A DNA stretch of 64,000 nucleotides from Klebsormidium nitens (taxonomy: Eukaryota; Plantae; Klebsormidiophyceae): contig DF237116.1 of NCBI GenBank assembly GCA_000708835.1, positions 1-64,000 on the forward strand, in the 5' to 3' direction. Below are positions 6,501 through 63,511 of the stretch, in pieces (the first letter of the stretch is position 1; each line of letters opens with the position of its first letter). The position numbers and the translations under genes were made by a program. The notes below the pieces were generated by a model. That model was not told the DNA's origin and made no database searches. It saw nothing but the letters and a program-made list of their open reading frames with translations.

Positions 6501-9500
6501 GGTTGCCGACCGGTTGCTTTTAGTCGCCCGGTTCAACAGCCGGGGGCCGATGGCGGGTGGTGAATACGTCGTCTCCAAGAGCGAGAGGGGCCTTCAAACG
6601 AAGGACCAAAGAGACGGCTACTGCGGGCGTGTTCGATCCAACTTTTCCGGGTCGCGCTTCCAGTTCTACGACCATGTGAGGGGTTTTTCGAAGGGCGTTT
6701 CATCTTTGTTTTCTTGGGTTTCTCTGGATGGTTCCATAATTCAGGATTTTCTCAACATGAGACGGCTACTGCAGCTTAGTCCGGTCGACCTTTCCGGGGT
6801 CACGTTTCCAGTTCTACGACCCTGTAAAAGGTCTTCCGGACGCTTTATTTTCTCTGGTTTTCTTGCATTGGAGTTCTTGGGATGAGTATTCAAGATGTGA
6901 AACGGCTTCCGCAACTTCGCCGAGTCCGTATTCTCGGGGTCTCCCTTCCACTTTTACCACCATGGAAGAGCGTTGTCTGCCGTCTAGAAGCCTGTATCCG
7001 ATCCTTTGGAGTCAGGCTTCGACAACGAGTCTTTATTGCGGACATTCATGATGAAAACATTCGTTGAGGCCGGCTTCTGTCATGCTTCTTGCAGTCCCCC
7101 TCCCATGACCGGTTAGAACATCCTATAAAGCCCACGACAGAAGTTGATCAGTATGGAACGGTCGCCTTATCGGATCCGGACGATCCAGACTGTGTCCGAG
7201 AATGCAGATGTGGACAAACCCCGGACAATAATTTAAGCATAGTTTGGGACGATTCTCTGACCATCTGGACGCCTCCTTTTCGCAGACTGTGTCCGAGAAA
7301 CAGATGTGGACGCAGGACTCTGTGGCGCACACCCAGGGCGCTGTGAGGTGAGGGGGCGGGTGACGTCACCTTGTTAACAGGCTTTCGTCTTGCCTGAGCC
7401 GCTCTCTTCTTAGTATCCCTCTTCCTCTGTGCTGACAAGGAGTAGGTGCGGTAGAGGTGATGATACTGAGTACCTGAGTGTCAGAAACAAGAAAGAACTT
7501 ATCCTCCCTACGACTATAAGAGGATTCCTTACGGTTCGGAACGCGAATCGCTGACGTTCAAGCGTTCTCGTTGGGCGAGCTATATGAGAGTCATTCGCTG
7601 AGGTCCTGCTAAATCTCACAGCAGTCATTTCCTGGAAAATAAGAAGTTTATAGTTTTCTCGACAGGGAGTGCCCGGTCGTGCCAGCACTCTGATATTTGC
7701 GGTAACCGGATGATGCAGTTGGGAATCGACGGCTAACACGCTTGCGGGGGGGTGGCGAAAGATGGGCGTTGCGGTGAAAGCACTTGACGAGGAGTCGCCA
7801 GCACCGACGTCGAACAAGGTGGGCGCCTTTTAACGTAGTCCAATGAAATGATTGCGAATGAATGCGTAAGTATTTGCATTTGGAGGGTTAGACAGTCAAA
7901 TTAAAGATTCGGAAAGGTTAAAATTTTCTGGAATGGTGCTCGGAAGCCCCAAAAGGACCAGAACAGCCTGCAAATGTTCTTTTTAGGCGATGGGAATCGA
8001 GATTGTTGTCGGAACGAGCATAAATGTTTCTGCTTTCCTGGTCGATTGTCGGAAAGCAATTCAAAATAGAGTTGTTCGGAATCATCACCTTAGACTACGG
8101 TACTCCTCTTCCCATGCCCTAAGGCACTTTCATGAGAGAGCATACAAGTAGTAGAATGTTTGGTAAGAACGAAACCCAGACCACAATCGTGAGGTACTGA
8201 GCCCTTAAATCCCCTCAACTTCCTTGGCTGCTGGATATTCTGTTGACCTTCTCATGAGCACGAGCCTAATTCTGGTTATGCTTTTGACTTTCCTTGTCAG
8301 GCAAAGGGTAAACAAAAACCTGGGCCTTGAATTACTTCGTCTTCTTCTCGGTCTTAAACCTGTTCCTGAATTGCCTTATATTCTATATTCAGGTCAAGGG
8401 ATGTGAAGCATCGAGCCCGTTGCTTCCCTAGTTGAGAAACATTTGGCAACAAATTCTCGAGCATGGAACGGAAATTAGAACTGCAGTCTGCTTATTTTTC
8501 CAAGTGAAACTGTATCGACAATTGGGTCTCGAGTTCCCCCGGCCGTAAGACTAGCTGGCGACCGCTTCCGACCAAAGCCTGTGTCTCGACCTGCTTTCTC
8601 AATTTGTCCGTTAGCCTGTTTCTGAAACTACGTTCTGCTCTGTTCTCAGGTGAAGGGGGATGGAGAACCGGGCCCCTGGTCCCCGCGGTTGTGGGACAAC
8701 ATGGAGCGCGAAAGGCAGTGCCGCTGCCTGCTGTCAAAAGAACCGGAGCACAAGATTGTGAGTAACTTAACTGCTTTAGGATCATGGTCGGACTGAAATT
8801 GCACTGAGCGTCAGGGCTAGGTTAGGTTCTAGAGTTTGGTTAGGGTTAGGGTCAGTGTTCCGATTTCAGTCGGACTTTTCGACATCTGCAAAACAAGGTA
8901 GGCGTGGTAAACTTCTTTGGATTTCCGGAAACATTGGCGTCTTTGAACCTAATTTTGTGGATCTTGCACTCTGACGGTCCTCACACAGTCGCTCCCTTCT
9001 TGTAAGGGTGTCAAATGCTCTAGCAATTTGGCTCTGCGTGAAAAGATACGAAAACGCCCAGAAGAAAGCTCGCTTCCGGGCAGATTCGCTTTCCCTCTTG
9101 TATGAAGCCAGACGTCTTTCACGCTGTGGCTCATGAATGGAGTCCTGACCGTCCGTTCCCGCCACGTGGCAGGACGACAAGGGGCGGGAGAGCTTCTTCC
9201 TTCAATACGGCGACAGGTGCAACTTCCCGTCAAAGCGCAACTTCCAGCTAGTCTCAAAGGTGAGGGGATCCAGGGATCTGTCCTTGTGGTTGCATGGGAA
9301 AGTCTTCTGCAGTTTGATTGGGGACTATCAACCTTTTCCCACGGACCATCTTCGAGTTGATGGAGAACGCTGGTTGAGCTGACTGCTGACTTTAGGTCAC
9401 ATCCGCCAAACATGTCGATTGACCTTAGGCTTCCCCTTGAATTCCGAGTGAATAATTGGGTTTGATACCGATTTTCCGACAGACTCGGGACAAGGTCTTT

Positions 9501-19240: not shown

Positions 19241-22200
19241 ATGGGGGCCCAAAGCTTTTACGTTGCCTGCTCAGCGCTACTGCTCCTGCTCCTCGTGATA
19301 AGTGGTGTCAACGCCCAGCCTGGGTGCCCACAGCCTGGTACGCAGTTCCTTAGCTTGACACCATCCGGCAGTAGAATTTTAGACAAGAAACACCAACTGA
19401 GTGCCTGCTTAGTAGGAATGAATGACTGAGCGTCTGTTCGTATCTGCAGTATTGAATGTGCGCATGTCTCCATGGGAGGGGGACTTTCGAGAGCTCTTTC
19501 ATCAGATTAGCCGGTAGAGATTTTGTAAACCATCTTCGCAGAACTCTGGCCGTTGAAAATACCGCCAATGCCTTTGTCAGCCTTTGCTTGTGCTGGCCGG
19601 CAAAAGGGCGTACTTCATGGGACCGGTCAATTTCGCTGCTTTCTGTATGTGATCGAGGGTGGTGTCATTATAAAGCCATGAAGCTGCTATGGCCTGCCTC
19701 ATTTCCAGACGGATCTACCTGCCTCAAACCTCCATCCTCCCTTCAGCATGGCTCTCAATGCGGCTCCGTTTCTATCTTACAAAAGGGGCCGTCGCAAGGC
19801 CCGTAACTCTTCCCCTCAACTTTGGTTTGACCCAAAATCTGTCAAGGATTTTGTTGTTTTAGGGTCTCCTTTCAAGGAGGTCATCCAGGTGTGACCACTT
19901 CCGAACACCCTGCTTTAACTTATTTGGCCGTATGATCAGCAATCATTACCGCGCTCTCAACTTTTGTCTACGTTACGTCAATATTTGTCGACCTTTCTCG
20001 TTTCAGGGGGTCCCCCGCCAGTGGGGCCGGTGCCTACCAACTGCCCCCCCCGGCTGCCAGAGAACAACGGGCCACTCTGCGGGCTCACAGCAGACGCCTC
20101 TCAGTTTAGCATTGCCGCAAGCGGGAGCTTCTGGTACGTCATCATGCTCGTACCTGACGTCATCTTCATCGTGAGGATGCTTCTGTAGTTGCTTGGAAAG
20201 GACATCCGTTCTCTTGTTGAAAAGAGGGCTCGCTCTTTTTTCTTACACGGTGGCGCGAAGTGCTCCGAATGGGCAAGGGACTACGAATGCATGCTCCCAC
20301 ATTTTGAGCATTCACTTCTTTTTAACTATTACTTCGTTGTCATTCTGCTGCATTTCGCCTCCATTCCGTTTCTGTTTCACAGTTTAATCTCTTCCAACGA
20401 CAGCACCTCGGATTTGCGGGTCAAGGCTCTGGCAGCATACAAGACTTTGGGTCTCCCCACATTTACATATCGGAGACACGTCAATCCAAGACCTTCAAAC
20501 CACAGAGCGCAGCTGCTGAGCCAGTAATCACAGGACCAGTCATTCCAGGCCCCCCTGCCCTCCAAACAGAGTGCTCGACTTTCGGTCCTAAAAGGGAATC
20601 AATCTGGCTTTACCATTATCAACCTCGTTTGTCAGGCTGACCTGCCTTGACCCTGCCCTAAGCCGGAATCAAACCGCTTGTTTAGCAAATGCTCAACTCC
20701 TCTGGTGACAAAAGCAAAGCGATTTGGCCTAACCCTGCCCTCAGCCGGCTCAAAACCCGCTTTCCAGGCGCATCCGGAGCAACAGTTGCCCCAACTACGA
20801 CTGGACCGGTCAGTCCAGCCCCGCGCGCGGAGCCGTACAACAGAATCTCAACCTTTTGATTCCCCGTCATCCCATACTCCAAAAGGGGACCGGAACATTT
20901 GTGGGCACTAGTAGCCCGGTCAGGGGACCCATCGGCGTGGCGTTCAATGCGGTTGCCATGTTCAGGTGAGCGGCTCTCTTCTCGTTCTTGTTGTTTTGCC
21001 CCAGCTTATCTCCGGCTTGCTTCCGCCTGTTCCGCCTGATTCTCTGTCTTCGCTAATTGGAAGGTGAATCAATCTTCGCATTTTCTTCCTGGCTGGTTCG
21101 CTGAGCGGAGGTACCTTAAACGGATTTCTGTGGCTGTTACATTTGACAACAAAGCAACCAACTCGACACGTGCTTCAATGGTTTGGAGCCTAAAACTACT
21201 TCGGTAGAACTCAAACGCTAAATCGGCCTATCTTGGTGGCAGTCATTACAAGGCCAGAGTTCTTCGACCGTAATGACATGCAGAAGTCCTGTGAAAGGAT
21301 GAACGCTTTCAGCCGGTCGAACAACGTCGTCATCTCTTCGCAGCTTTGTCGATGCTCTTGGTCGCAACGCGATCCTCTTCGAAGGATTCACTTTCGACTA
21401 ATGCGGCGGACACCTGGCGCCCAATCCCAGCACTGACCACTTCCACCACTTCCACCGGGGATGGTTCACCGGCCGGTCAATATCAATAAGCTCCAACTAA
21501 CCCGAAAAATCCTAACCCAAAAAAGAACCTGCTCCGCACCCCCTCCCCACCCTGATCCCCTGCGTAATTCTTATACCCGTCCCAGTGCGCTTACCAAATA
21601 ACACGTTAGCATTCATTCCGTTCCTGATATTGAAGCTGACATCACCCCCATTTCTTGCAGTCCGGTTGACGCCCTAGGCCGCGACGCCCTCCTCTTCGAA
21701 GGCTTCACCTTCGACCAGTGCGGCGGCCACGTGGCACCCGGCCCCAACATCTACCACTACCACACCATGCCCGGGGATGGCGCCCCGGGCAGTCACAACA
21801 ACACCCTGAACGAGGACTTCAACTTCTGTGCGCCGGTTGCGCCGCTAGTCGCGGGATCGCCAACCGGGCACTCGCCCGTGTTTGGGATCTTCTATGACGG
21901 GATCCCAATCTACGGTCCTCGGGTAAGGAACAACTTTTATTGTCTCTGCGAGCAGCTCCGTTTCGATGCTTCATGCTAGAACGAAGACTTCAGTTTCTGC
22001 GGGCCCGTCGCGCCGCTAGTCGCTGGATCGCCAACCGGGCACTCGCCCGTGTTTGGGATCTTCTATGACGGGATTCCAATTTACGGTCCTCGGGTAAGGA
22101 AGCAATTCAATATTTGGGCGAGCGCCTCTGCTTTGGAAGTTTGCAGAACGCCAAACGCGCCGCTACCGAGAGATTGCAACTTGGGCGCTTGCTCATACTT

Positions 22201-25200
22201 AACATTTACCAAGACGGGATCCCAGTTGACGGGTTCCGAACAAGAAAATTGTTTATATACCTAAGCAGGATACTAGCTTTCCCCTCGCCAGTTCAGCGCA
22301 GATGGTGTCAGTTTGACCAGGGCTTGCCCGATACAGGATGTCGCCACGTTTAGCCGTCAGGGTTGGCGGTCTTGGTCAGGGGCTTTTGCACTCAGGTTCA
22401 TCACCTAGATCTTTCAGCTCGGAATGTCAGTAGAAACACTCTGCCTGTCTTCGAAAGAAATTGATTCATTGAAGGGACGACCAGATTTCGAACGAGCTGC
22501 GGGACGATCTGGCCGGCTATCTCGATCGTCCGTCGTTCGCAAAGAATTGCGAACGGGCTTGAAGTGCCGTTCAGCTTGAGAGATAAGTCAGGAACGTCTG
22601 GCCCAAGAAAACCTTAAGGTTTCGAGAAACATCGAGAGCCCTGCTGCAAATCCAAAGGACTTTTTCGAACTTTTACTGAATGATTCCAGCTCTCTCATGT
22701 TACGGTACGCTATCTCTGCAGTTCACAAGTTAAAGACCAAAAGAGCATGCCGTCTTGAGGAACTAGAGCGAGACCTTTTTCCCGTTGCATTTGCAGGGCG
22801 ACAACGGCCAGCTCCCGCAGAACCTCGACGCCTGCAACGGACACGTGGACCAATCGTACCCGTATTACCATTACCACGCCACGAGCACATACCCTTACTT
22901 GGTGAGTTCTCCGAAACGCCGTTGCTTCATGCGCCAACCTGTTAAAGTTGGATTCAGTCAAATGTTTCCTCTTAGGGAATCAGTCTCTGTGCGCTCTTAG
23001 CCGGGCTCTGACTGTTCAGTCAAGCACGCCGCTGACTGATTTGCTTTGAGACTCCGCGTCTGTAGTAGCTCAGAAAACCGCGCCGACGGATTCGCAGCGA
23101 CGGGTAGTCGCGAGTTCCCTGTCTGTATGTCGCCGCAAGCGACTCGGGCCAAACGCGCTCAGCTCAATAGAGCCGACCATACAACCAGAAAGTTTCAGTA
23201 GGAACAACGATCTGATATCCGGATAAGCAGGTTCGCTATCATCTTACACTGAATCCTTAGCACAACATGACGTGTTCCGCACCCTAACCCACCCTCACTA
23301 ACATTCAGCGTCACCCAAAATCCGACTTCGTTGCAACAATCGGACCTTAAGAATATTTGAAGTGCAAAGATTTGAGTGATGTTGCATCTACGTTACAGGT
23401 AAACTGTCTCAAGGGCTGCGTTGATCAGTCGACGGGGAACAACAACTTCGGGAACGTTCCTTGCATTCCGGACGACGGTGAGGGGGTTTTCAGCTTCTCT
23501 GTTTATGCTCGTCGCTGTTTGTTTCCCTGTTCAGAGGCGTTGCGGTGTTCATTCTCCTGATCCGACGGCGCTGGGCTGTCTGGTCTCGTGATTCGACGGC
23601 GCTTTGGATCTCAGCATGCTTCTTGTTCCACAGTTCCTGTCATTAGGCTTGCAAAGAAAGCTAAAGAGAAGACTTTTGTTGAAGAGCACTGCGAGTGAAT
23701 CAAACGCAGATGCGACTTACCTGTTGTCGGATTGATATCGGCAGAGTCCCCAGCAAGTGCGCTTGGCGTGACGTCAGGTCAAAACGCCGCACGTGCAGTC
23801 TTTTCATGGGCGAGGTCAGAGGGCACCCTACATCTTCAGGAGAAGAAAGAATGTCAAGTTTTATCGTAAGGGTATGCTTGTCTCTCCGGTCTGTAATCCA
23901 GATGCCTACTCTCTTCGTTGCGCGTCCATAGGCCGAGCCTTGGAGCTTTATAACCCACAGCATTACGGGTCTTTAAGCTAGTAGACTGTCTTAATTAAGC
24001 TTTGCTCATCTGTTTCTTGCAGTCCAATACGACTATTCTATCCTCGTCACGCAATTCCCTAGGTCTGCTCTCCAAGCGGCTATCTACAGCGCCCCAGGCA
24101 CGTGCGATTCAGTCACCGGTGGATCTACCCCCCTGAACCAGTGCTTCAACAACGACGGGTCTTCGGTAAGCCGATCAAATAGTTCGTCCTTTTGTCTTAG
24201 GGACGGTTAGCAAAGATTCTCAACATAACTTGACTTGCGCCGTTGAACTAGAGCTTTTACAATGACGTTCTTTGCTAAGCCGATAAATTGGTTCAGCCGC
24301 CGAATTTGAGGAGGCTTGGCGAAACTTTTCTGAACAGAATCGGGTTTGCGCCCCAGAGGGAATCCTTTGAAAACGACGGGTCTTTGATGGCCGTATGGAC
24401 GGCTTCGTGGCATTTTTCTTGGAGGAGCTCGACCAGACAACACTCAAGATGTACTGAGGAGCTGCCAAACGCTTCAGATCAAACGCTTCAGATCAAACGC
24501 CTCGGTCTTCCATTGTGATTTGCCATCGCTTGTGAATATCCAAGGCCGCAAATCGCTTTCTCTAAAGGCTTCCTTCGCTTTTGTTTTGCCACAGCTTTCA
24601 CAAGCGATCCATTTTCCTGAGCTGGCAGAGAGCAGAAGATACCTGCTTTGATCACCATGTCCGTCCAGTTTCGTCGTTTTCGTTTTTTCTTCTCGTGTAC
24701 TACTCCGGTCGCCGTATGACGGCATCTCCTGACTGCAGAAGCCTTTCTTCTTTGGCAGTGATAGTCTTGCTTTCTGTTGCCGTTTCCAATCTATCTACAA
24801 GCCGTCCGCGCTTATATCTCCAGCTCTGAGTAGATTGCTTCTAGTCGGTCCTATCGTCACATGTCGGAGTTTGAGAAAGCCCTGATTACTCCTGTCGGTT
24901 CCGATGCTCAATGAAAGCTCTTGCTGATTAGAACGGTTTTTCCCTGATCGGCCCATCAGCTTCAAGTTTAGTCAACCCGCTCAGCCTGTGGCTTTTCCCC
25001 TCTCTTCCGATTTTTCCTCACACTTTTCGATCAAACCCGTTGACCTTTTGATTACCGTCTCGCTTCCGACTTTCTTCTCTCTTTTGTAAACGCCCCTCTC
25101 GTTTCTTCCGGTTCTCTTGCTGCGCCGGCCATTGCGGCCCGGTAGGCCCTTCCCCGACGTGCGAGAGCGGCTACACTGTCCCCAATCCAAATGCCTTAAG

Positions 25201-26458
25201 CTCTGTTTGAACAGCTCTTTTCATTGTCCGCTCTCGAATGTTGCTCGCCATCTACGATTCGTTCTTTTTCTGCTCCGGTTCTCTTGTTGCGCTGGCACCT
25301 GCGGCCCGGTAGGCCCTTTTCCAACTAGTGCGAGGGTTTGGCACCATCACAAACGCCTTATGTATCTCCCGCTTTTGATTCATACTCGCTTTCTAAAATT
25401 CCCTCTTGTCTTTCCCAGTTCTCCTGTTGCGCCGGCACCTGCGGCCCGGTAGGCCCTTCCCCGACGTGCGAGGGCGGCTACACTTTCCCCAATGCAAACG
25501 CCCCGGCCAATACGACCGGGACCCCAACTCCGGTGCCTACTTCCTCCGAGGGGGGTTCTTCCGCCCCGATTCCTACCCCCCCTCCACAGCCCACGCCCTC
25601 ACCGGGGAATCCTATCGGGGGAGCGCAACCCGTCGGAGGAGTTTGCGATCCCTACGGCCAGTACCCCAACCAGGTGAGACTATAACCAAAAACTTTGATA
25701 GTAGTGAGGATCTGATAGTAGTAACGAAGAGGAATATACTGGTCAACGGACTAAAACCCTGATTAGAACATGACTTGCTCCGCACCCGAGCCCAATGCAA
25801 CCTTCAAAGTAAGCCCACCCGTCCTCATCGGTTGCTTGTGACCATTAAACCTTGTTACATTAGAAGAATCTGCACTGGGAAATAAGTGCTGTACGCACGG
25901 TATGTACAGATTGGTATGTCCAGATTGGTCGACATGTGACAAACGCTTTCGAAATTTGCTTGTGGGTTCGTCTCTGCTTTCGAGACCAGGTTTTCTTACT
26001 AGTCGCCGCTGCTCGTTGTTTCTCTGCTGCTGACGGAAGTCGTACGATTGAGGTACTCTACTGACCGCACGCAGCAGGCAGGCACTCCAAGCAGTTCGCC
26101 CCAATCGATGTCTAGCTTTGGGGCTTCGAAAGTCTGGCTTGCAGTGTAGCTTGACTCGTTACGCTGAACGGGGTGGAAATGACTGACCAGTGACGATCAT
26201 TAGAATCAAGCCAAAATTTGCAAAGAGATACGACCAGGCAATAATGGCTGGGGGGGGGGGTTGTCCTCATATTGCATGTATGATCAAGTTACTGAGAGCT
26301 TTTCGGGGAAGATGGTCGCCCATAATCAACGGCTCAACGACCACCAACATGACAAGCCCGTCGCTTCTGGATTGCAGTGCTTCAGCTCCGATGGTTCTGC
26401 GTCCGTTTGCTGTACGGGAGCCTGCCCCTCAAGCCCCTCCAGTTCCCCCGGGTGTTAA
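19241..26458 (+). CDS. Secreted YHYH-domain protein with Cys-rich repeats and a Pro/Thr-rich linker
   Basis: Nine phase-consistent exons: 19241-19337, 20007-20133, 20768-20965, 21661-21922, 22797-22901, 23399-23477, 24023-24165, 25419-25673, 26378-26458. Signal peptide; RSNSCPNY, GPIGVAFNAVAMF, DQCGGHV...IYHYH, HSPVFGIFYDGIPIYGPRG, LDACNGHV...YYHYH...TYPYLVNCLKG. Confidence 0.88.
21344..22245 (+). repeat. Intronic copies of both ends of YHYH exon 4
   Basis: 5'-end copy at ~21344-21470 (retains cag acceptor, has TAA); near-identical 3'-half copy with gtaagg donor at ~21979-22098; more decayed copy at ~22200-22245. Confidence 0.85.
21477..21633 (-). mobile_element. Degenerate copy of the G-rich-core fold-back element
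   Basis: actaac...cctaacc...gctccgcaccc...ccaccct...tacccgtcccag matches the reverse complement of the 34135 core; residual arms tcaatatca/tgatattga. Confidence 0.6.
25111..25357 (+). repeat. Two intronic copies of the 5' end of YHYH exon 8
   Basis: 25111-25195 and 25278-25357 match ttctcctgttgcgccggcacctgcggcccggtaggccc...; both have lost the acceptor AG (ccgg in place of ccag). Confidence 0.9.
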
Positions 26459-28842: not shown

Positions 28843-31800
28843 CTATGCCATCAGTCCTTCAACAATGAAGCCACAATACAGGTCCCTGCAAGGAAGCACC
28901 CAGATTGTCAGGAATTAACACTTTTGTAACTACTGAAGATCGACATAATCCAGAAAACCAAAGCTCTTTCTTTACTGGTATCAACTAAATGGGACTCTTC
29001 CAAAAGAGCACGACCTGGCACGTCAAATCAAGAAATGAAGAAACCCTCGCGTTGCCAGACGAATCCACAAGCAGAGGACGGGGAAGAGGGGAGCAAACCA
29101 CGCTAGATAAGAGATAGAAATCATGCAAAACCCAAAGCGCTCTTGCAGTCGTCGAGTCACGAAGTAAGCTCGCAACTAGGATGGCGCCTCTCTCGAGACA
29201 TGAATCTGGCCGAGGTTAGCAGTTGGCTGGATACTCAACGAAGTCCACTTCAATGAGAAACGGCTATGGAAAGACAACACCCCGTGAATAGACTAAAAAG
29301 GACTGATAAGAAGAGCCAGTTGACTATCCCTATTCACCGTTATTGCGGTATTAGCTGAGCATCGTTCTCAACACCTCGTAAAAATTGTCAACCAGGCTGC
29401 CTCTAAACTGGCATCAACATTTTGCAGAAAACATTTGCATAGAAAATGACGTCACTGCAGATCTGGACGATCAGGATTTTGGACGGCACTTTCACGAACA
29501 TTCAAGCACCATGCACTTGGGAACGATGCACGTCTTACGCCCCCTCGAAACAGGGGCAACACTTACGATGAATAGTTTCTGACGGAAATGGCAATTGACG
29601 CCAAGGCCACATTCAGAAAGGCATGAGACAGTAGAAGAGATGTAGTGACAAGAAATCGCAGTGGCTGTCAACACCGAGGCCACATCCAGTAAGACATGGA
29701 GCAGTAGAAGAAAATAAGTAACCAAAGATCGCGGACGTGTGGTCCTTACATGGAGTGCTTGACGGCCTTGACCGCCTCCTCGGCGCCCAGGAAATCGTTC
29801 ACAGCAACCTGCTTGTTCTCGTTCTTCTTGTAGTCCTCAAAGAAGCGCTGGATCTCCTTGAGCCTGTTCGGGGAGGGAGCCAGCTCTTGGTCAGCATCAA
29901 GATGAGATGAGGAGCAGAACTCTCATGAAGTACGCCTGGGCGTCTTTGATTGAACCCGCCTCGAATATCGTACAAGAACAGCAGATATGCTTTCGATGTT
30001 GCTCTACCTCCTCGATCCTAAATCAAAGTACCCAAACCAAAGTTAGCGGTCACCCAGAATCTTAGAACGCAGAACTGCAAGCATTTCATATCTCGATCCT
30101 GGCGTGTTGCTCTCTCTTTACACAGACAGGAAAAGGGCCTTGATAAAAAAGTTGTTCCGACCTGTGGGGGGGCAGTTGCTTGATGTCGGTGTAGTGGCGG
30201 AACTCCGGGTCGTCCGCGCAGACCGCAATCACCTTGTCGTCCTTCTCGCCCTGCACCGAAGGGACGGATGCCATCAGCGGCTCAGTCATGACGTCAGCAT
30301 CCCGGGCACTACTGGGAGCAGAAAAGGCAGAAGAACCACATACTTGTACAGGTCGAAAGTTGGTTGAGGGAAGCTGCCAACTGGTGGTCTCGAGAGAGGC
30401 GACCTATTTTCCTGCGCTCTTAAAGTTGACTGATCTGAAGGAGAGAGCGTTCACCGAGGGGGTACTTTGCAATACGGCTGCACACCTGGTCCGTCAACGT
30501 CATGAAACCAGTCTCACTAAACCTGCGACTGATGGAGTGATCAATGCTTTATGGTCCAAGATTTGCGGAATGGCTGCTTTCTTGGTCAATCATGGGCATG
30601 AGACCAATCTCAATAGCTCGCTGAACATTTTATGGTCAAAGTACGAGAGATGGCTGCTTACCTGGTCAATCATGGGCATGAGACCGATCGCACGGGCCCG
30701 CAGGAAAGCGCCTGGTAGGACGGGCTCTTGCATCAGCACGAGGACGTCGATGGGGTCTGCACAAAGGAGACAATGGAATAATTCTTCATTCCTGTCCCCC
30801 CTATGTTTTTGCAGCCCTTCATTGCAGGATGTCAGTCTGCCTGGGCAAATTCCTCTTGACTGCCGCGACGGATCAGATCCACTTGTTATGCTATCTCCTG
30901 CGTTGCACTGTTGTGAAGGTCACACGTGTTTCAACGGATACCAGGGGTAGAGGGGCAAAGACTTAATGCAGTTCTGCCAGGTAGTGATGAAGAAAGGCAG
31001 TACACAATGCACGATAAAGACAATCTTGAAGTAGAAGGGGATCCTATCCCTCAACTTGCTGAATGGAAACAGGATGGAACTGGCTGCATGTGTCTGAGGA
31101 CGGGACTTCTGGACATTAAGTAAAGAGCACAGGCTCTGATCAGGGGTCAAATCCATCTACCGGTTGCAAGCGAAATGCATGATCATGGAGGGTTCAGGCA
31201 AAGAGGGGGTCTTACCATTGTCCTCGCAGAGTGTCCTGGGAACAAAGCCGTAGTTGTGGGGGTAGACTACAGAGGAGTAGAGCACGCGGTCAACCTGCAA
31301 CAGAATCAGCGGCGGTGTCAGAGACTAGCTGCTTAAATTGTGACGTTTAGGGTTTTGAGGTTGGGGTTTGACTCCCTGCTAGCATGCTCTGCACAGATTG
31401 ACAAATAATTGTTGGCAAATCACCTCAATCAGACCCATCGAAAAGAGACCTAGTTCATCTGCGATTGAGGACATGATTGGACCGAGTACTCAGACTGACA
31501 ACAGTTCAGGCTCAATGGGAAAGACCCCTATAAAGTGAAGGTATGTCACGCTTGATGCCGAATCAATTCAACTGAGAGATTGCTGGGTGCTCGACAAGAG
31601 AAAGGCTGGTGCCTTTGCCTTTGGTAGTGAGCAATTTTGTCAATCAAGTTGCATAGTTCCACTCCATTGTTTATCTATGTGTTGAAAAGCAGACTGACAT
31701 ACCTTGATGAGCCCGCTCTTCTTGTCAAGCTCGTACTTCACCTTGCTGCCCTTTGAGATCTCAATAACGCAGTTGAAGACCTGGGGAGCGCCGGGACCTG

Positions 31801-33434
31801 CAGCATACGCGTGACTCAAATTCTCAGCGATTAAAATAATTGATCCTTGTTCACAAAGTAAACTGATGATTATCGTGAATCAAGGAAAGTTCCAACATCT
31901 TGGCAGCCAGATCCTGTGACCCTCAGTCTGATTAAGACAGCGATTGCCTCAGTCAGTGAACAATTTGAGTCCGCTGTCAATAAATGCAACCCTCTGGTCA
32001 TGAGCAAATCCTGAAGATTTTCTGCTGTGCAGATATTGCATGATTGATAGCAGCAAAGTTCTCAATTGCCACGCGGGAGCCAAATTTGAACGTGATCAAC
32101 CATCTGCTCAATGATAGCACCATGCCAGGAGCTATCCCAACCCTGGCTCTTATCAAGCATAAAAGCATACTTGCCAATCATATTATTGAATCTCCCACTG
32201 CGCAGCGAAGGGCGCAATCGCTTCTGGCGATACTCGATATGATTCTGACAAATCTGAAACCCTAAAATCTGCCTACTGGCGGAAGCCCTTTCGAACATTA
32301 GCACTCCCGTGCAGAATTACTTTCAACAAGGAGCAGTTGAGGGTCGAGGGTTGGGAAGCATCTATAGAATGGTAGGATTCAAATGCATTTTAAATGGAGT
32401 TTTGAGATACTAGCTGAAAGGAATCTTGAGGAATTCAGCTAAAATTTCCGTACCAACATCGATATCGTGCCAGGGATGTGCAACCACATTTCTGCTGAAC
32501 TGGCCACGCCCCCCTCGGCCCTTCTGCACGGATAGCGGTCCAAGAGGTTGGTCAGAGTACGCACCATTTCACTCAAGGAAAGGGCTGGACTTTGTTTTGA
32601 CACTGAACGTGTGGCCAGCACCCCTCTTGAGCGAAAGGCAGTCGCAATACTCTGAACCAGCCTCTTGGACTGCCTGTCCCTCAAGAGGGCTGCTTCTAAG
32701 TGCTCTCTTGGCTTTGCTTGCTGTTTAAAAAGCAAGGCCAAGAGACCACTCAGAAGCCAGATTCAATCAGAGTATTCTAGGGGGTTTGTTTATTAATCGC
32801 TAATCTCTGCTTGCATCTTACCAAGTTCCAAATCGTGCCATGGATGAGCAGCAACAGATCTGCTTATGAGAGCGGAGAGTGTCCGCTTGGGAGGCTGAGC
32901 AACCTGCGCAGTTGTCAAGCAATGCATCCCTCTTGAGCAGATTGACAAAAAGGGAAGGCCGCTGATCTCAACACAAACGTGTAAATCAAGCCACTTTTAT
33001 TCTTTCTTAGCATTATTGACAAGGGATGAAGCTGCTGATCTATCCGGAATCGTCAAAATCCAAGCAGATGAGGTATGATCTTTGCCAATCCTATGTGCTG
33101 ACTCCAATCAATGCAAGCAAGGGTGCCGCACAGCACACAAGAGGGTTTGCATTCCCTCTAACTCATCTACAAAAGTCACTCTTGATTGAGCGAGAACATA
33201 ATACAGGAAATGCAAGCTTCTATATGTATAAAGTTATAATGAGGTTGCTCGTTCTTTGAGACACCTTGAAGATCCATTCAATCCACTGCCACCTTGCCAA
33301 GGAAGGTTAGATAGCTTCCTTACTGGTGCACTCATTGTGGGAGCGGGAGCCGCCTTCGGTTCCTGCTTCTTCACTTCTGCTTTTGTCTCGGGGACCTCGC
33401 TCTCGGCCTTCTTCGTCTCAGCCTTCTCACTCAT
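28843..33434 (-). CDS. PPA: Soluble inorganic pyrophosphatase (family I, plant cytosolic type)
   Basis: Eight phase-consistent exons: 33434-33324, 32903-32822, 31797-31703, 31294-31216, 30756-30662, 30250-30162, 29863-29750, 28885-28843. Motifs [74 protein letters not shown]. Confidence 0.96.
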
Positions 33435-34134
33435 TTGCGGAGGGACGAGCTGCTGTGAGGTGCGTAGCTGCGAGTAAGCGAAGCAGAGACAGGAGGAGCA
33501 GCTGAGAACGCGAGGAGGGCGGAATGAAAATGGACGCCAACGATCTACGAAACTTTTGCTGAACGGGCACCTTCTCCGCCTCACATTGCTCGTGCAGCGG
33601 CCGCTTCCAAAACGGAGTCCATGCAGCCACACCGTACTTCAGATTGACACTATCGTTTGCCCGAACGCACCACTGAGCAAGTTGTGCTATTCTGTTATGA
33701 ATCCAGTGTCAAGACAAAGAGGGTGTACAAACTGCAAAGAAGGATGATTCCCCAGGACCGCCAGCAATTTTGGAGGCGCTTCGAGCCCCACGATGATCAA
33801 AAGCTACGGTTCTCAACACTTGACGCGCGCGCATCGACCCAAGATTCACCAGCAATTAATGAAGTCAGCGGCCCATGTACCTATGCCGTACAAGTGGCAG
33901 ACACAATGCACATTGCAGAGCATCGACGGCTGAGGTGGTAAAAGAATTACAACCGCCAACTAGGTGCGACAGGGGATCCGATCCGACTTTCGCCGTCATA
34001 ATTTAAGATTCATCGCGACCGTCAAAACGTTTGGACGGCCAGATAACTTCCAACGATTGCGAATTGCATCTCCTGGTATAGATTGGGTGAGAGTTGTCAA
34101 AGTTGCTCACGTGGCGGCCTGGAAACTTCAAGAA

Positions 34135-34311
34135 TCTTCAATTTAGCAATAGCAAGCTTTAGCAATAGTAAGCTCACCAGCCTGGGACGGGTAGGGTTAG
34201 TTTGGGGGTTAGGGTGGGTTCGGGTGCGGAGCGGGTGTTTTTGTAGGTTAGGTTTTTAGTGTTAGTGCCGGAGCTTACTATTGCTAGGGCTTACTATTGC
34301 TAAGTTGAAGA
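34135..34311 (+). mobile_element. Fold-back element: 41-bp inverted arms around a G-rich telomere-like core
   Basis: Arms 34135-34175 and 34271-34311 match at 37/41; each holds two tandem ~16-bp units (tttagcaatagtaagc). Core gggacgggtagggttagtttgggggttagggtgggttcgggtgcggagcgggt at 34184-34236. Confidence 0.8.
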
Positions 34312-34696
34312 GACATGAAAACTTCGGGTTGTGGCAGGTTGACTCAAAAGTGGAGCTGCAGTTTCCTTCGCCAGTGTTCCGGCCAGCTTCAATGGTGCAG
34401 CTGGGTGCAGCTGCTCAACAAGGACAACGAGCATTTGTTTAGCTCTTCCCTACATCCAGGCGCATGAAAAGAAGTTTGAAGCCACAGAACAGAAGGAACC
34501 TTTGCTTTGAGTCATTTCTGGAGCACGACAACACAGAGCGGTTGTCCTCAAGTTTGCCTCGCAGCGGTCATCATCTTTTGGCTGAGACAAAGGATTGGGC
34601 TGGATCGGTCCAAAACACAGCATTAGGGTTTCTTGTTGAAGAAGCTCTTGTGCCCCCGCTTATGGGGCGATAAGGTGCAAGATCTGGGGGTAGCTT

Positions 34697-43310: not shown

Positions 43311-44771
43311 ACGCGCGGCGGGAAGATGGCGTCAGGACGTGGAGCTAGGAGCGGCGAGAAACAGAGCTGGTCAGGGGTCAATGACGATTTGAGAAAATAA
43401 AAACAAAATAAATGATTGCACATGAGAAGTAGAGCTGGTTTGTGGAACAATGATCAACGGTTAGAAATGATGAACAGTCCTGAAGTGGTTATTTGAAGTG
43501 GATGAGCGCTTCGAATGAGATCGCTTAGAAGACGTGGGCAGATTTAGATACAATGAGTAATGCTCCCTCGTTACACGCGAGTCACTTTCGTTTCCAACTA
43601 TCCCATCGAGTAGAAGGGTTGAGTGTACCGAATAGAGTGCTGCCACTCATTGAGGGTTAGTGAGCAATAAGCTGGGTGCCCATTATGGCTCCGACATGAA
43701 CATGCTGAGAAACGAACCAAATATAAAGACCAGAGAAGATGGAACAATCAGACGGGTTGCAGACGGTATGCCGAGAAACTTAGCGTTGGCAATAACATTG
43801 ACGATCGCACAAAATTAGAGAGTTTGATTTCACGACAGGTCAGTGCTTGAGTCTTCGACAGTGCAAGAGAGGCTTGGAACCTGGAACGAACGGAGAAAGC
43901 TTTGCATGGTTCAACGATTATGAGCGCAAGACCAGAACCACTGCTCAATCATTCTGCACTCTTGACCGCATACGTACATACTTCTGATGAAGCTAGTTAA
44001 ACGCTCTGTCAGAGCTACCTACCTGATTGGAGCGATCAGTGCACGTCGTAATTGCATGCCAGGGGGCGTTGATCGAAAGACCCACCCCTGATCCCGCACC
44101 GAAGCCGACGTACGGTCGTCACATGAAATCTGCGTACAAATGTGCAGGGACTTGGGATGGAAAACTTCATTGCTCATGCAGAGCGAATGTTATGGCAGGG
44201 AGGAGGCCTTCAAATTCCCGGCGCCGATTGAGTTACAAAATAGCCCATGGCAATATGGTCTGAGGCCCTTCTACGCACGTCGACCGTTATGTTGGTTTCG
44301 ACAGGCCTGGCCCGTATTGCATGCGTCCCAGAAAGGCGGGAAGTTTACAGACTATCGTCGAAACTCGTTATATTGGAACTGAATGCAATGCAATAAGCAC
44401 CGAGACTGGCCGCCGCTGCAGCCCGTTTATCGGGCGCACGAGCATGATAGCTTTGCTTTGCAGGGTTTTCACGTGCCTCGCTGAAACACGTCGGACAATA
44501 GATAGTCGCCCGAAAGAAAGCCCGAAAGAAAGCCGTTGTGTGTGCATGCTATTCCAAGCCTACAGCAAAACGCACGACTTTAATCGTCAGTGCAATGAGG
44601 GCCAAAATTTGTTGTTACAGATTCATACGGTCACTGAAAGGGATCTGCCGCCTAAACACAACCACCTCCTCGTCCTTTTCGACGATCTGCGTCGATTGCT
44701 TACCTGCAACAATCACGGTCCGTGTCACGAAAGCGGGGCTTCTTGATTCATATTTGCACGTTTTCAGGATA

Positions 44772-44967
44772 CTGGCAACTCTTGCTTTCACTAACCGCAG
44801 CTTTCACTAAGATAAAGGAGCCCCGGGCACCTCAACTAAGAACCCTTACCTATGTAATGACCCGCTCCGCACCCGTACCCACCCTAACCCCCAAACTAGC
44901 CCCACCCGTCCCCCGGGTGCCTGTCTTAGTGAAAGCTGTCGTAATTAGTGAAAGGAAGAGTTGCCAG
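44772..44967 (-). mobile_element. Fold-back element, same core as 34135 but with different arms
   Basis: Core 44860-44912 matches the reverse complement of 34184-34236 at 50/53. Arms ctggcaactcttgctttcactaaccgcagctttcactaaga and tcttagtgaaagctgtcgtaattagtgaaaggaagagttgccag. Confidence 0.8.
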
Positions 44968-46440
44968 AGTGTTTTCAGGGTCGGTTCCGCACGCGATGCC
45001 GTATCGGCCCCCCCCAACCATAGCGTTTGAGCTTTCGCTGCGAGGACATTCGCGGAGGCATCAGTTGCTAGCAAGCGATGGACGTTGTGTCTGAACTCTT
45101 GAACTCATTAATGCTTCATGACTAAGTACAACTCAAAAGTCAGGTACTTTGTCTCTCAGCAAAACGGAGCCGAGACAGTTGCTCGATTCGCGAGCTTCTG
45201 AATTCGTAATGACGAGATGCATTCCTCGTTTCGCCGCGGGATGCCTCTACGCTTCTCATTCTCGGCCAGTAAGAATCGAAGGCCGGGGGCTGCAATCGAA
45301 GGATGGATAGCACTTATTAATCAGGAAAAGGGATCTGACAGACCAAACAGATTTGAGTGATTCTGTCATATAATCTCGAGGCCGTCAATCAAAACGTGCG
45401 GTTAGATTGTACTGACGTCAGATTTTCACCTTGTTTTGACGAAGCTGACAGCGGTATATACTGCGTCCAACATTGCAAGCTAGGGCATGACAGCATTATG
45501 TCAGACTCGAAGTTCGACGTCAATCAGAAGGGTATTACGTAAAGCTCGTCGAGGATTTTCAGCCCATCCTTAGAATCAGAGGGAAGGTTCAAATACAGAG
45601 GTGAACACCACCAGCGAACACCAAGTTGTTTCGGAGCAGTGGGGCTTCTGTGACCAGGCTGAAAAGCTTAGCACCAGTTTTGGAGAACGACTGTGCCCGC
45701 CCCTAGGCCGGCGCTCGGGCGGCCCCTTGTGGCTGATTGGCACTTCCAAAATGGTTCGAAACCATCGATTATTAGTGACTAGCTAGTACAAGCCTGGTCA
45801 TTGCCGGGGTGCTATGTTTGCTTTGTAATCTGTTATAATTTCGCATAACATATTTGCCAAATATGTTATAATAATATGTTATAATAGCAAATTTTGCTGC
45901 GATCCCTCAATGCGAAGAAAGATGAAGCAAGGTTATCTAGCCGTAGCTCACGAGCTAAACGCATTTCCCTGATAATAATCTGCAGGCTGTAATCAATAAT
46001 GCACTCGCCAGCTGGGCCTGCTTCATTCCGCTGAGACGCGGGCCCCGGCGCCTCGCGGCCGCGAACGGTCCATCTAAGTTCACGGCCGGCCCTGGATTCC
46101 CACGTGGACACCGTAATCTTGACTGTCAAGCACAGCCGTCGATCCCCTATCCGAATGATTAACGGACGGCTCAAACTGGCTATCAAGCCAACAGGAGGGG
46201 AATCTTCGCTGAACGTCGGCCAGCTGGCGGCTTGACAAAGCGCTGGATCAAGATTTGGAGATCTGCGTGAAGAGAAGCTTCCAAAGTTTTGCTTGCTGTG
46301 CAAAAGTTCGTTCTTTCTTCCCTCTTGTTTGAAAGAATACTCCGCTCCTTTCAAGTTCCCGCATTGCTGAGTTTGGGCGACATCCAAGGGCAGAAGGTTT
46401 GACCGCTCAAAGTTCTTTGCATCTGCGTTGTTTGTGAAAG

Positions 46441-54402
<7,962 letters not shown>

Positions 54403-57400
54403 AGACCTAAATTTTGTGACGGAAGGGCTATATCTCCATACCAAGTCGATAGAAAGTCAGTGTCATGCGTCTATTTTGTATGTTACGTCATGTGTTGAGG
54501 GAGTGTGATGAGTGCGCGTTGATTGATTGAGGCGCCATCCGGCAGACAAGTGCTGCATGCGGAGATACTGATACTGTGTTGGAAAGGGACTGTCGGGAGA
54601 GCTCCGTCCCGAGCGGGAGGGCCCGGTTTGTGATGTCTCGTATTTGATCTTTAAGCCACCAGAACCACGAATTGAGAGTCCGTTCGCTGTGGCAAGTTTG
54701 ACATAGAAAAACGTTTAAGAAGCGAAGTAGTGACCCACTTCGTCAATCATAGTTGCTGATAGGGAAAATGCGGTCGACGGTATACAGTGACTTCAAAGGT
54801 TTCTGCATTGTTGGATCCAAGTTTTGCAAGTGTCCCGGCGGCGGTGGGATCGATATAATGCCAGGCCCACTGCATGCTGACAAATGACTTGCTATGGCTC
54901 GCGACGGCAGCGCGGGCCATGAATGTTTGAGCCCGGCACGGAGTGCCGTGCGTAACCGACGGTGAATTGATGTTCGTATGGTTTGGCTCAACTTTAGCAT
55001 GCCTGGCAGCCTGGTGCCGCGGCCACTGTCTGGCAGCGAGCGGGCCTGGATTCAGCTGGCCGACGAGCGGAGTCCGCGCTTCGAACATCACCAGTCATGG
55101 CATTCTGCATTGCTTGGCTTCCAGTGCATCACCGATTGAATTAACGTATCTGCGCTCGTTTCTAGTAGCCTGTGTTGTGTAAGCTAAAACCCAGATCCAA
55201 GCATGTTTGTTTGGCGCGGCGGCCTGCATGTACGTGCATGCAATACGATGCGTTGCGCCTGTGTTAATGACAATAAGAAAGTAGGAATCAAATACGGGTG
55301 TTTGGCATGTTGGATGAGTCTCGATCATGCATGCACATGCAGTGGCACTGAGTCCTGATATTATGTAGCTAGGATATCACATGTGCAGCGCATATCATTA
55401 TATACGATCGATCCTTGAGGAAGTCGAGGGCCTCATCATTCATTGCCAGTTGGACGTGTCGAATAAAAGCGCGCAAAAAATTAGACCTTCGAAGGTGGTT
55501 CTTAACGGTTCAAGCTGTCAAGCTGGATATATACCATATTAAGAGCTATTCAATTACATGCTGGCATGAAAGATCTTGTAACTGATGTTGGCAACATATC
55601 TTCAAATACGTCGGACGGGCCCAGGCTCGTCACATTGGCATGCTGGTTAAACTTGACTAGAATTCACAGAGTGACTGCTTATGCATGATCGAAAGACAAG
55701 AAAGCAGCCTGTCACCGGGGCGGCTAAGTTCTGTTACCATCGGAGACCCGGCCGGCGTCTCACCGCGCGGCCCGGCCGACACTGGACAAATTCCAAGTTT
55801 ACGGTGCGGTCTCATCTGTATGAAACCGATCGGGGTTTCTCCCGCGAGCGTATGTAAGGGCCGCTAGATTTTGTTTGTCTTCATCTACGATGGTCACGAA
55901 GGATCGTGCCTAGCTAGTCTCAAGAAGACCTCCTACCACCTTTTTAGCTGTCTCGAGTCGTGTACTAGGATCCAGTCATATAGCCCAGCTTTACGTCATG
56001 TCTTTCACGACTCTTTTCCGTGAAAGAGACGTTTAACCAGGCTCGCTAGTAAGAGTCAACCATAACTGCTTGTTCCGTGGTCCCATATACGTTATGGTAC
56101 CGTCCCATAACGTATACTAATGGGAAGTCGGCGGTCCCATACGGAACTTACACGAACGTACTGACGAACTAGAGTAATCCTGTACATCAAGGCTGCTGTT
56201 GTCCAGCTGGTGCCGCTTCAGTTTAGCAGAAGGTATAGCATCCGGCCATGAAGTTGTGTAACCAGATCTGCCAAGCATAAGTAAGAATTTCGGATCTCTG
56301 AATTGCTTAAGAGCCAAATGTTTCTTGATGCAAGTCCTGGCTTTTAAGGACTGATATGTCAAACTCGGAAGCGGGCGCATTATGAAAGGTCCTAGTAACC
56401 AACAGTACATGGACGAATGAGACAGCTATAGTAGTTGTGGCGTTCGAAGCGATTCATCCTAAAGCAAGAATTTTGTTCAAAGCTGTTTCTGCCCGCCGTC
56501 ACGCCATACTTTCCTCGAGGATGATCATCTTCATGAACGTACGTCTTTCTTGAGACGCTGATCCGCAAGGGGATTGGTCCAGATACCGAGAGAACATACT
56601 TTGATAAGAAGTTACGTTTCATCTTGTTCATCGAAGCTCATTGAACGTTGGCAAAACTTTGATATGCAACGAAGGGGGGAGAACTTCATGTAACCATTGA
56701 GCCCTTGCTCCCTTCCTTCTTCTTCTCCAACCTTCAGTTCCTCTTAAGTGCTCAATCGTTGAGGTTTTCCCCGTTTGCCCGGATGCACTGCAGAACAATC
56801 AAGCTACTTTCTAACATTGTACCATCGATATGCACGTGTTTCAATCATCCCAGAACCAGCTCATTCTGTGCCAGCAGATTTGTTTACAGCCTTGAATCAA
56901 CGATGTATCTCTCAACAGTACTCAGCTTCAACCTCATGAGCCAAATCAGGCCACTTCCCAATCTTTGCGCATGGTTTTGATCAGACTTTTCAGAGGTTCC
57001 GAAAGAGTGGCTGGACAGTCCACAAAACCGGCTGCCTGAGTCCACAAAGATCTGTTGCGCAGAACCGGTTGCATGCTCGAGACTTGTGTCGGAACTGGGC
57101 TGTTATTCTGTCGAAAATTCTAGAAAGTCTATTCTCTCTCCAAGCAGAAGTCACCAACAAAACATCTGTTGAGCAATTGATTCTGTTCAATGTTTCACCC
57201 TCCTCGCAGCAGCCTTGATCCGCAAAAGGAGACTTCAAAGGCCTCTGTCGAGTTGTTGACGCGATTGAAGGCAAAGTACTGAAAGGCCCTTGATTCGCCA
57301 TAGAGCCTGAATGAGCATGACGAACAAAACTGTTCAGAAACAGAGTGTCAAAAGCTCAACTCACCAACAGATCAGCCACTCGTCATGGCAGGTGCGCAAA

Positions 57401-57588
57401 ACAAGTCTTTTGAAGGTTCCTACCCAGTGGTTGACCTAAGCAAAGGCAACGTACTGAAATGCTCCTGCATCGCCGTAGAATCCGAAAGAGTACCGCAGTA
57501 AACAAAACTGAAAAGAAAACAGAGTGTCAAACTGAGCTCAACTCACCGACAAACCCACTCGTCATCAGCCCCCGCCCGGTTCCATCTT

Positions 57589-58963: not shown

Positions 58964-61192
58964 CTTCTCGTGAGTCGTCACATGTCATATCCGCGGGCGT
59001 TCAACGAAATTCCATCGACGGTTTTTATTGTTCCTAGGGTGACGTCTTCCGGATTTGAGTCCGTTGATAAATCACTTGCGCGTGTCCGATCGACGGTTGG
59101 TTGTCGGATGAGCTCAGCGGACCCGCGTCGGAAAGACGGTTAAACTCGACACAGACTACACAGGCTATTAACAGCTTGGTAGTGCAAACTTGTTCTAACG
59201 TTCGGACACGCATGAGAGCAGGAGCCTATGAGATGACAAAATCGTTGAGGATTGAAAATACATCCGAGCCATCAGTGTGATGAAATTTTGTCCTGTCTCT
59301 CGTTTTAGAGGTACGAGAAAACCCTTAGTCCGCATTCTGACCCCTGACAACTTCAATTAAATCCGGCCACTAGTAATCAAGTTAGCATGATAGCATGATT
59401 GCATGCAATGGGAGCATGTGGAGACAATGGTTGACGTATACTAGGTACTGAACGAGTTCCCCGCACTGAGGAACTAAGAGATGATGATCGACGATCTGAG
59501 CCATTGACTAATTCGGACTTTGCAACGTAGTGGAATCGAAGGAAGGCTAAGAATATAAGGATGCTACTACCGTAGCTAGGTAAGCAGGCTGGATGGCTTT
59601 TTCGGTCTTGGCCGTCCACGGCTTCAAGTTCATCGTCAAGGCTATATATAAATTCCTTCAAAGCTACTCTTCCATGCATTTTGTCCACTTTTCGGTCATC
59701 CGTTTTCTGGCCCTAGATTAACCGGGATCTGGCATCGGCAAGCTAGTGCGACGTTTCGGGGCCAATAATCTGGCATTTGGCCCAAACATTTATGGGAACA
59801 TAACAATGATCTCGAAGTTTTCAATTTTCCAAAAGATCGATATGATGGAAGAGGTTGGTATCCAAACTCACATCCTTGCATGGTAAACAGCTAGCTAGGT
59901 TTTTTATGTTCAATATGAGTGCCTTGATGTGTGGAACATGGCATTCTCAGACTCTGGAATTGAAACTTTGACTCATTTACGGCTTGAGATTCAAATACCC
60001 GAACCCCCGGGAATGCCACGCTGCCCGGGCCAGATCATTTTAGTTCGGCAATAACCGTAGAACTTGAATGGTTGAATCTAGCTGCAGCACAAGCTCATGG
60101 CCTGGCGGCACCTTGGCAAATGCTCTCAAACAAGATATTTTTTGAATCCGGCCAGCAAACTCGATCAGCCGAGCTCGACAACCAGTAAAGAAGTCAAAAC
60201 TGTTTATCGTCACTACGTTCATAAGATTAGTACCTTAGCAAGCTAGTTTGTGCGCGTGCTCGCAGAAAAGATAAATCTGGCTAAGCTTCACATTGTCTGA
60301 GTATACTTGAACGTAATTCCTTCTGAGTCAACTCCATAACAATAAACATAAATTGCTCATGTCTGTTGCACACAGTTTTTCCCGAACCCGGCCAGCCATG
60401 CGCGCGCGCAGGCGTGCCTAAGGCCCATGGCCGTGCCCTAAAATGTCTACGACAAAGACGCAGCGTGTAGAAAAACTAGCCTAAGCGGGCGCGAAGCAAC
60501 AATTAATCCCCCGTTCCTTGTCGATGTGGCTGCACATCTGACATCATCACGTACCGTCGTGACAAGCCGCTGCAGAAAGAACTTTCTCCGCTGCGCTACT
60601 CGTCAAACCTAGTTACAAAATTGGACATGCACGTGGAGCCACGCGAACAGTAAACAATTGGCGCATGTTAGCACCTGTCCCGCGCCTTCCGGTGATGACG
60701 AGTTCCGCGGTCATTCCGGCGCACCATGCAAGGTTCGCTTTGACGGATAGATTCCGGCGGCTGGCTGGCCCCCATGTCAATGACTGAGCACGAAGTCGAT
60801 TGCGCTGATGTAACCCGGGTTCAAGTGGTCGGTTATCTGCACGGGAAGAAACGACGCCGACATGAGAGCCACTTGAAGACATCACAGGAAAGTGACGTAA
60901 GGATCAAGCGGTCAACGAAAGCTCCTCTCAACCGTTTGCAATTGTTGGATATCGCAAACAGGAGTCTTTGGTAGGACGCTCCACGTCGGCGCAAAATGAA
61001 CCGAAGGAAGCCCGCACTAACGTCAGACGAGGCGACAGCTTGAGATGGGTCTGTAATCTAGCCGATTTGATTTTAACATATCATTCCCGCCCCGCGCCCC
61101 CGGCTGTTCAAATTGCCTCGGGATCCGATGAGAGAGTACCCCTTGCGCTTACAACATGTCTTGATGTCCTTAAGAAGCAGTGTCTCAACGAT

Positions 61193-61340
61193 ATGTCATA
61201 TCAAAGGGCTATGTATTAGAAGGCTCATTGCCTGGGACGGGTGGGTTAGTTTGGGGGTTTAGGATGGGTGAGATTTTTCATAGGACAGGGTTCGAAGTGT
61301 TGAGGAGTTCCTTTACAATACATGGCTCTTCGAGAGTCAT
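61193..61340 (+). mobile_element. Fold-back element copy with a shortened core and a third arm sequence
   Basis: gcctgggacgggtgggttagtttggggg matches the 34135 core; degenerate arms atgtcatatcaaagggctatgtattagaaggctc and gagttcctttacaatacatggctcttcgagagtcat. Confidence 0.6.
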
Positions 61341-61468
61341 CTTTCTACCCAGAGAAGCACTACGGCCTTCCAACTTCAACGACCGAAGGCGACATAAAGA
61401 CGGGAGGCTAGGAATTAGCTAGGAGGAAGTAGTCGGTAATCCGACGGTGCAAGATGAGGGCGACTCAC

Positions 61469-63445: not shown

Positions 63446-63511
63446 CTGCATACACACAAGAAGCCAGTGATGATTTTTCCTAAATAGTACAGACTTGTAT
63501 ACTGGTAACTC

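Follow-up and report, generated by a model that had tools for sequence, protein, structure and literature searches.

A family of short fold-back elements in Klebsormidium nitens with several arm types around one G-rich core

A 64-kb stretch of Klebsormidium nitens DNA (the window, by which we mean the whole stretch that was analysed) contains seven copies of a G-rich core, found by profile search: four full elements (A, B, C and D), two decayed ones (E and G) and one fragment (F). These elements probably make up a family of non-autonomous cut-and-paste DNA transposons (MITEs) of a Foldback/Mutator-like kind, in which several arm types, at least three, surround one G-rich core. It is normally the ends that define a MITE family and keep it going, and an interior kept at about 82% identity across ends that cannot be aligned stands in contrast to that rule. 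An earlier note on this DNA had described several arm types around one internal core as the reverse of the usual MITE pattern, and the comparison of A with B, where the cores align and the arms do not, bears this out. The family is, all the same, an unusual variant of ordinary cut-and-paste mini-transposons and no new class of mobile element. If our reading is true, an interior shared across subfamilies would mean that the body of a MITE can outlive or switch its transposase-recognition sequences, and the family would offer a natural setting in which to study the influence, if any, of an internal G4-prone loop on transposition.

Copies of the element and their target-site duplications

The profile HMM took five cores as input, found the same five again and added two sites outside the model, at 25752-25826 (E = 1.9e-8) and at 23252-23297 (E = 7e-4). 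All of the copies claimed earlier, at 34135, 44772, 61193, 63512 and 21477 together with a fragment near 23274, are present, and the profile adds the one at 25752-25826, which was absent from that list (Table 1). Alignment of the seven sites gives a consensus of about 100 nt, whose invariant columns are the G-runs. When the window was searched against itself with BLAST, the core was the only dispersed repeat, among many local tandem duplications, and similarity between copies ended at the core edges. The shared G-rich module measures about 100-115 bp and includes a short conserved inner stem, which reads approximately TAAGC.C on the left and GG.GCT..TTA on the right of the conserved part of the alignment. 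The cores of A and B, the two best copies, differ at three positions in their best 53-nt stretch, the 50/53 identity counted previously, and are 82% identical over 92 aligned columns.

Table 1. Positions of the G-rich elements, their parts and target-site duplications (TSDs), and of the local tandem duplications in the window
Feature	Positions	Strand	Inverted repeat z	Remarks
Copy A, full, 187 bp	34130-34316	+	10.3	hairpin z -8.5; G4 motif 34184-34224
Copy A, arms	34130-34175 and 34271-34316			each a terminal ~12 nt and two 16-nt units
Copy A, G-rich core	~34173-34269			
Copy A, TSD	34121-34129 and 34317-34325			GGAAACTTC and GAAAACTTC, 8/9
Copy B, full, 202 bp	44769-44970	- (G-rich strand on minus)	10.8	hairpin z -9.5; ends ATACTGGCAACTCTT and near-complement of ATACTGGCAACTCTT
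Copy B, TSD	44760-44768 and 44971-44979			GTTTTCAGG on both sides, 9/9
Copy C, full, older, 171 bp	61182-61352	+	3.5	13-nt core deletion; weaker arms
Copy C, TSD	61173-61181 and 61353-61361			AGAAGCAGT and AGAAGCACT, 8/9
Copy D, full, old, 204 bp	63499-63702	-	5.6	arm type as in B; end ATACTGGTAACTC
Copy D, TSD	63490-63498 and 63703-63711			CAGACTTGT and CCGACTCGT, 7/9
Copy E, decayed	21477-21635; core 21495-21593	-	2.5	9-nt terminal inverted match TCAATATCA is all that remains
Copy G, decayed	25703-25876; core 25752-25826	-	1.8 (p 0.056)	arms marginal
Fragment F, 46 nt of core alone	23252-23297	-	none	without arms
Local tandem duplications	6127-6838; 21348-22101; 25083-25502; 49124-50271; 51313-51677; 52333-53634; 57268-57565; 61567-62431			

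The full elements are short (171-204 bp) and non-coding, with arms of about 45-55 nt, so that the two arms account for roughly half of each element. Left flanks were compared with reverse-complemented right flanks and scored against shuffles. By this test the inverted arms are highly significant in A, B, D and C (z between 3.5 and 10.8), weak in E and G and missing from F. As single strands, A and B form long hairpins with a stability far above that of shuffled sequences (Table 1).

A 9-bp direct repeat flanks each of the four full copies, at precisely the same distance from the inverted repeat on either side (Table 1); the earlier note had found no target-site duplication evident. For each inverted repeat, the scan took the best-matching pair of direct 9-mers near its two ends, and the same search at 3000 random position pairs, scored for near-symmetric matches, served as the null. 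Matches of 9/9 arose there with a frequency of 0.4% (0.004), of at least 8/9 with 2.5% (0.025) and of at least 7/9 with 14% (0.14), which gives a combined chance of about 2.5e-4 for the four copies (a hand estimate by Fisher's method). The repeat at B is exactly nine bases long, because the adjoining bases differ on both sides. The duplicated sequences of the four copies are unrelated to one another, as target DNA would be, and they set the boundaries of A, B, C and D. In A the boundary is ambiguous by about 3 nt, as a 12-nt direct repeat (10/12) at 34118-34129 and 34314-34325 is also possible; the A duplication starts with GAA and ends with TTC, so that the inverted repeat extends into it. 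No duplication is recognisable around E and G. Taken together, the 9-bp duplications point to ordinary staggered-cut integration.

On the G-rich strand, CTG[GA]AAAC is common to the target duplications of A (34118-34129 and 34314-34325) and B (44760-44768), in registers that differ relative to the element ends. A common target motif was rejected: the sequence is absent from C and D, and with the A and B registers differing it is probably a coincidence. A weak target preference of the family is possible.

Assignment to a transposon group

The full copies have the features of MITEs, being short, without coding capacity, bounded by terminal inverted repeats (TIRs) and flanked by a duplication of fixed length, 9 bp. 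They also have features of Foldback/MULE-F elements, namely TIRs that are built of tandem subrepeats and form a large part of the element (A and B), together with the 9-bp duplication. Judged from duplication length and architecture alone, the Foldback/Mutator assignment appears the most likely one. The target-site duplications of Mutator elements range from 8 to 11 bp; Merlin elements have duplications of 8-9 bp, and given this length Merlin is a possible superfamily for the elements. Plant foldback transposons (FARE, Hairpin, Tnr8 and those of Rebatchouk and Narita) belong to the green lineage and have a hairpin body with modular, subrepeat-containing arms. The present family resembles them in these descriptive features; a conserved G-rich loop is, to our knowledge, no described feature of plant foldback transposons.

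A duplication of nine base pairs is typical for Mutator-type transposases. Duplications of 9 bp have been tied to MULE transposases, and in Tm1 of root-knot nematodes Foldback-like composite TIRs, such duplications and MITE-like derivatives go together with a MULE transposase (PMC3169594). The elements described here resemble FB and Tm1 in consisting mostly of hairpin, in having arms of short tandem units, in the 9-bp duplication and in the abundance of miniature non-coding derivatives. FB and Tm1, however, are recognised as families by their composite TIR motifs and vary in the middle, whereas here the middle is shared and the arms differ between subfamilies. The arms are also short in comparison (about 45-55 nt, two units), and no transposase partner turned up in the window. 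A Foldback-like shape is found in the P superfamily too, in Galileo (PMC3573991).

Several other assignments were considered and rejected. A MITE of the hAT (8-bp duplication) or P (7-8-bp duplication) type does not fit the B duplication, which is exactly 9 bp with differing bases on either side. HUH single-strand transposons have asymmetric ends and make no target-site duplication; elements of this kind that recognise hairpins (Helitron, IS200/IS605-like) were dismissed on account of the 9-bp duplications and the symmetric inverted ends. An introner-type element is contradicted by the position of A, which is intergenic between divergent genes, and by the ends of A to D, which have no common GT...AG pattern. 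A known RNA family was discarded as well: Rfam gave nothing at gathering level for the whole window, and A and B had chance-level matches only, at E up to 10. Nor are the cores telomeric or interstitial telomere repeats, as they contain isolated TTAGGG-like hexamers only and no array. The Klebsormidium telomerase product consists of TTTTAGGG-type repeats (PMC3622300), and the likeness to telomeres described earlier is therefore superficial.

Searches for relatives and partners of the family were negative within their scope. The window showed no sign of an autonomous partner with matching ends, and none of its ten ORFs of at least 170 aa contained a Pfam domain, in what is a crude screen since the genes are split by many introns. 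For the ORF that reads through B, a word-indexed protein search gave no candidate relatives, and HMMER gave one unrelated repeat protein. A metagenome search for further copies returned one GC-rich chance match with no element around it, and the viral and prokaryote collections held none. In the literature searched we found no account of a family with this G-rich core or of Klebsormidium MITEs.

Arm types and the shared core

In copy A each arm consists of a terminus of about 12 nt followed by two 16-nt units that are 94% alike. In copy B a 15-nt terminus is followed by the 11-nt motif GCTTTCACTAA, which recurs at 16-nt spacing. The tandem units of about 16 nt are clear in these two copies, weak in C and decayed in D, and the u-u-core-u'-u' layout proposed previously is in this sense real, with two such units per arm (in A, 16/16 nt, 94%).

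As for the sequences of the arms, alignments of the arms only, scored against shuffles, reveal homology between those of B and D, at z 5.2 (p<=0.002) for the right arm and z 2.3 for the left. The two copies have the end ATACTGGYAACTC in common, and their arms are 78-82% identical in aligned positions. No significant arm relatives of A or of C were found in the window by these alignments, and the arms of A and B cannot be aligned at all beside their 82%-identical cores. The four full copies in the window thus have at least three arm types (B/D, A and C). The arms are not unique to each copy, and the B/D pair contradicts the claim that the four full copies have unrelated arms. When the seven copies in the 64 kb are grouped by their ends, B and D are the sole end-sharing pair. 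By eye, E has CTTCAAT and TAAGC.CAC in common with A, and G has GTTGACCAGTAT in common with B and D; neither resemblance is significant against shuffles, and both were rejected as grounds for calling E an A-type or G a B/D-type copy.

One origin suggested for the arms was templating from target DNA, in which fold-back synthesis or template switching would copy them from target or neighbouring DNA every time an element inserts. The arms of A and C, which lack relatives in the window, and the fact that each arm is an inverted copy of its partner would agree with such an origin, which we nevertheless hold to be most improbable. Compared with their own 300-bp flanks on both strands, the left arms scored within the range of random 300-bp pieces of the window. 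B and D carry homologous arms at different loci with different duplications, and clean 9-bp duplications lie outside the arms. Moreover, the layout of a terminus and two units recurs in unrelated arm sequences, which would be hard to obtain from random target DNA. No arm units were found elsewhere in the window. Since the arm-flank scores are those of random DNA and the B/D arms are common to two loci with different duplications, templating at insertion is unsupported, and no new class of mobile element is opened by it. The earlier note had itself named arms that fall into subfamilies, with standard TIRs and target-site duplications, as evidence against its reading; in the window this is seen in part, as the 9-bp duplications and the B/D arm type.

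Both A and B are young copies whose arms match well and whose duplications are good, and an 82%-identical core beside unalignable arms is not the outcome of plain descent and neutral drift. In the B/D pair, conservation of the arms (78-82% in aligned positions) does not fall below that of the core (70%). This indicates that inserted copies decay as a whole and that the host does not preserve the core, so that conservation acts in the active lineages or, alternatively, the core has moved between lineages. Agreement with the consensus reaches 88% of cells in the G-run columns and 78% in the other columns (Fisher p 0.009, where the cells are non-independent and the alignment was anchored on the G-runs), a weak hint of selection on the core. 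The variable part of the elements is the outer ~45 nt on each side, where a transposase would putatively bind. The conserved part with its inner stem may be the remnant to be expected if an element landed in another's loop and its own outer ends were lost afterwards.

The same observations bear on the possibility that the core itself is the cis-signal, with a transposase recognising the loop, or a G4-prone structure at the tip of a cruciform, and with arms that need only be self-complementary and could thus vary from lineage to lineage. Such a signal could account for the 82% identity of the A and B cores between unalignable arms and, on the rough test above, for the better retention of the G-runs. 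It would also suit the layout of a terminus, two units and core, which is the same in all arm types, and the canonical four-run G4 motifs in A, B, C and E, which are 4 of the 8 such motifs in the window, with 1.7 expected in shuffles. However, the tandem subterminal repeats of the arms are the usual form of transposase binding sites, and because the arms have this protein-binding layout the core is the less likely signal. In addition, B and D have kept the same terminus, suggesting that ends matter, and old copies lose arms and core at similar rates. We know of no DDE transposon that uses an internal loop as its sole recognition site, and we regard this explanation as unlikely.

In the reading that we prefer, cut-and-paste transposition with recognition through the arms, the elements would be dead or dying MITE copies of 170-205 bp that fold into a long hairpin, each arm being a terminus of ~12 nt followed by two ~16-nt subterminal repeats, and the loop being the G-rich module. 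A DDE transposase acting in trans would most likely integrate them via a 9-bp staggered cut, a cut length that points to the Mutator/Foldback group. It probably recognises the terminus together with the subterminal repeats, and the arm types (B/D, A and C) are probably matched to different transposase lineages. As to the route by which subfamilies came to share the core, we infer one of two: gene conversion, interrupted gap repair or nested insertion may have carried it from one to another, or selection in the active lineages may have kept its G-runs. After insertion, copies would decay as a whole.

A bolder proposal, which we put forward tentatively and think doubtful, is that the G-rich body of ~100-115 bp is a portable selfish module. 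It would either acquire new transposase-recognition ends, through conversion, through interrupted gap repair or through nested insertion with subsequent loss of the inner ends, or be kept for a G4-prone loop that promotes hairpin extrusion and transposition, and the unit of selection would be the interior and not the ends. If this were true, a module repeatedly given new ends could live off several transposase lineages, one after the other.

The closest parallel to a single core with differing ends is Galileo of Drosophila mojavensis. Some of its copies combine two TIRs from one subfamily with the central region of another, and this region recurs in several copies; ectopic recombination or conversion, its two breakpoints lying within the element, was proposed as the origin of the chimeras (PMC3573991). 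Galileo differs in its 7-bp duplications, in TIRs of hundreds of bp and in that copies bearing a transposase are known. Chimeras make up a minority of Galileo copies, whereas in the present family a shared core is the norm. Foreign interiors are also known from P-derived MITEs such as AgaP2-P12MITE, a hybrid P-MITE of Anopheles gambiae, where they have been put down to ectopic gap repair and where the ends may derive from different transposon subfamilies (PMC1562414). With this element and with ordinary MITEs the present family has in common that it is short and non-coding, has TIRs and target-site duplications and occurs in many copies. Typical MITE families, however, are defined by conserved ends, and an 82%-identical interior across unalignable ends is not usual among them.

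Genomic surroundings

Copy A lies in the divergent intergenic region between a pyrophosphatase gene (minus strand, PF00719, exon 31640-31819) and an ISCA gene (plus strand, PF01521, ORF from 34697), about 380 bp upstream of the ISCA start. This agrees with its previous placement in the PPA/ISCA divergent promoter region. Among named entries, those closest to the ISCA exon are from streptophyte algae, and the exon has relatives of 96% identity on a 27-kb public contig and of 82% identity on a 104-kb public contig.

Such a position, together with the strong hairpins of A (z -8.5) and B (z -9.5) and a core rich in G4 motifs, could be taken to mean that the elements are hairpins used by the host, either as small-RNA precursors or as regulatory loci (for example G4 promoter modules), with mobility incidental. 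We give this very little credence. The absence of an Rfam match speaks against it, as does the presence of every state of decay, including arm loss and a 13-nt core deletion, and the B/D core is no better kept than the arms. Half of the window's canonical G4 motifs belong to the family, which is located in promoters and gene-dense DNA, and for this reason it matters for genome annotation and for G4 or small-RNA surveys of this alga.

A 132-bp local duplication, with units at 21348-21479 and 21665-21795 that are 75% identical, encloses copy E. The gap of 185 bp between the units has the size of a full element, so E was probably inserted between existing duplicate units. Local tandem duplications of 60-250 bp, with periods of ~140-320 bp and 70-94% identity, are numerous in gene regions of the window (Table 1). 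Two exon-like copies encoding AHPWHD, at 32410-32529 and 32793-32948, occur among local duplications in the pyrophosphatase gene. The region of this gene also contains two adjacent palindromic stretches, 32617-32694 and 32692-32757, which are 78-80% self-complementary and unrelated to the core family.

The 397-aa ORF at 510-1703, which has no Pfam match, adjoins a cluster of four GGTACCTACCGGTA-like motifs in the first 300 bp, where 0.08 would be expected in the whole window; the cluster is inside a 160-bp fold-back with arms at 2-23 and 139-160. Between copies C and D, an exon of a class 3 lipase (PF01764, E 2.5e-7) is located at 62363-62551 on the minus strand.
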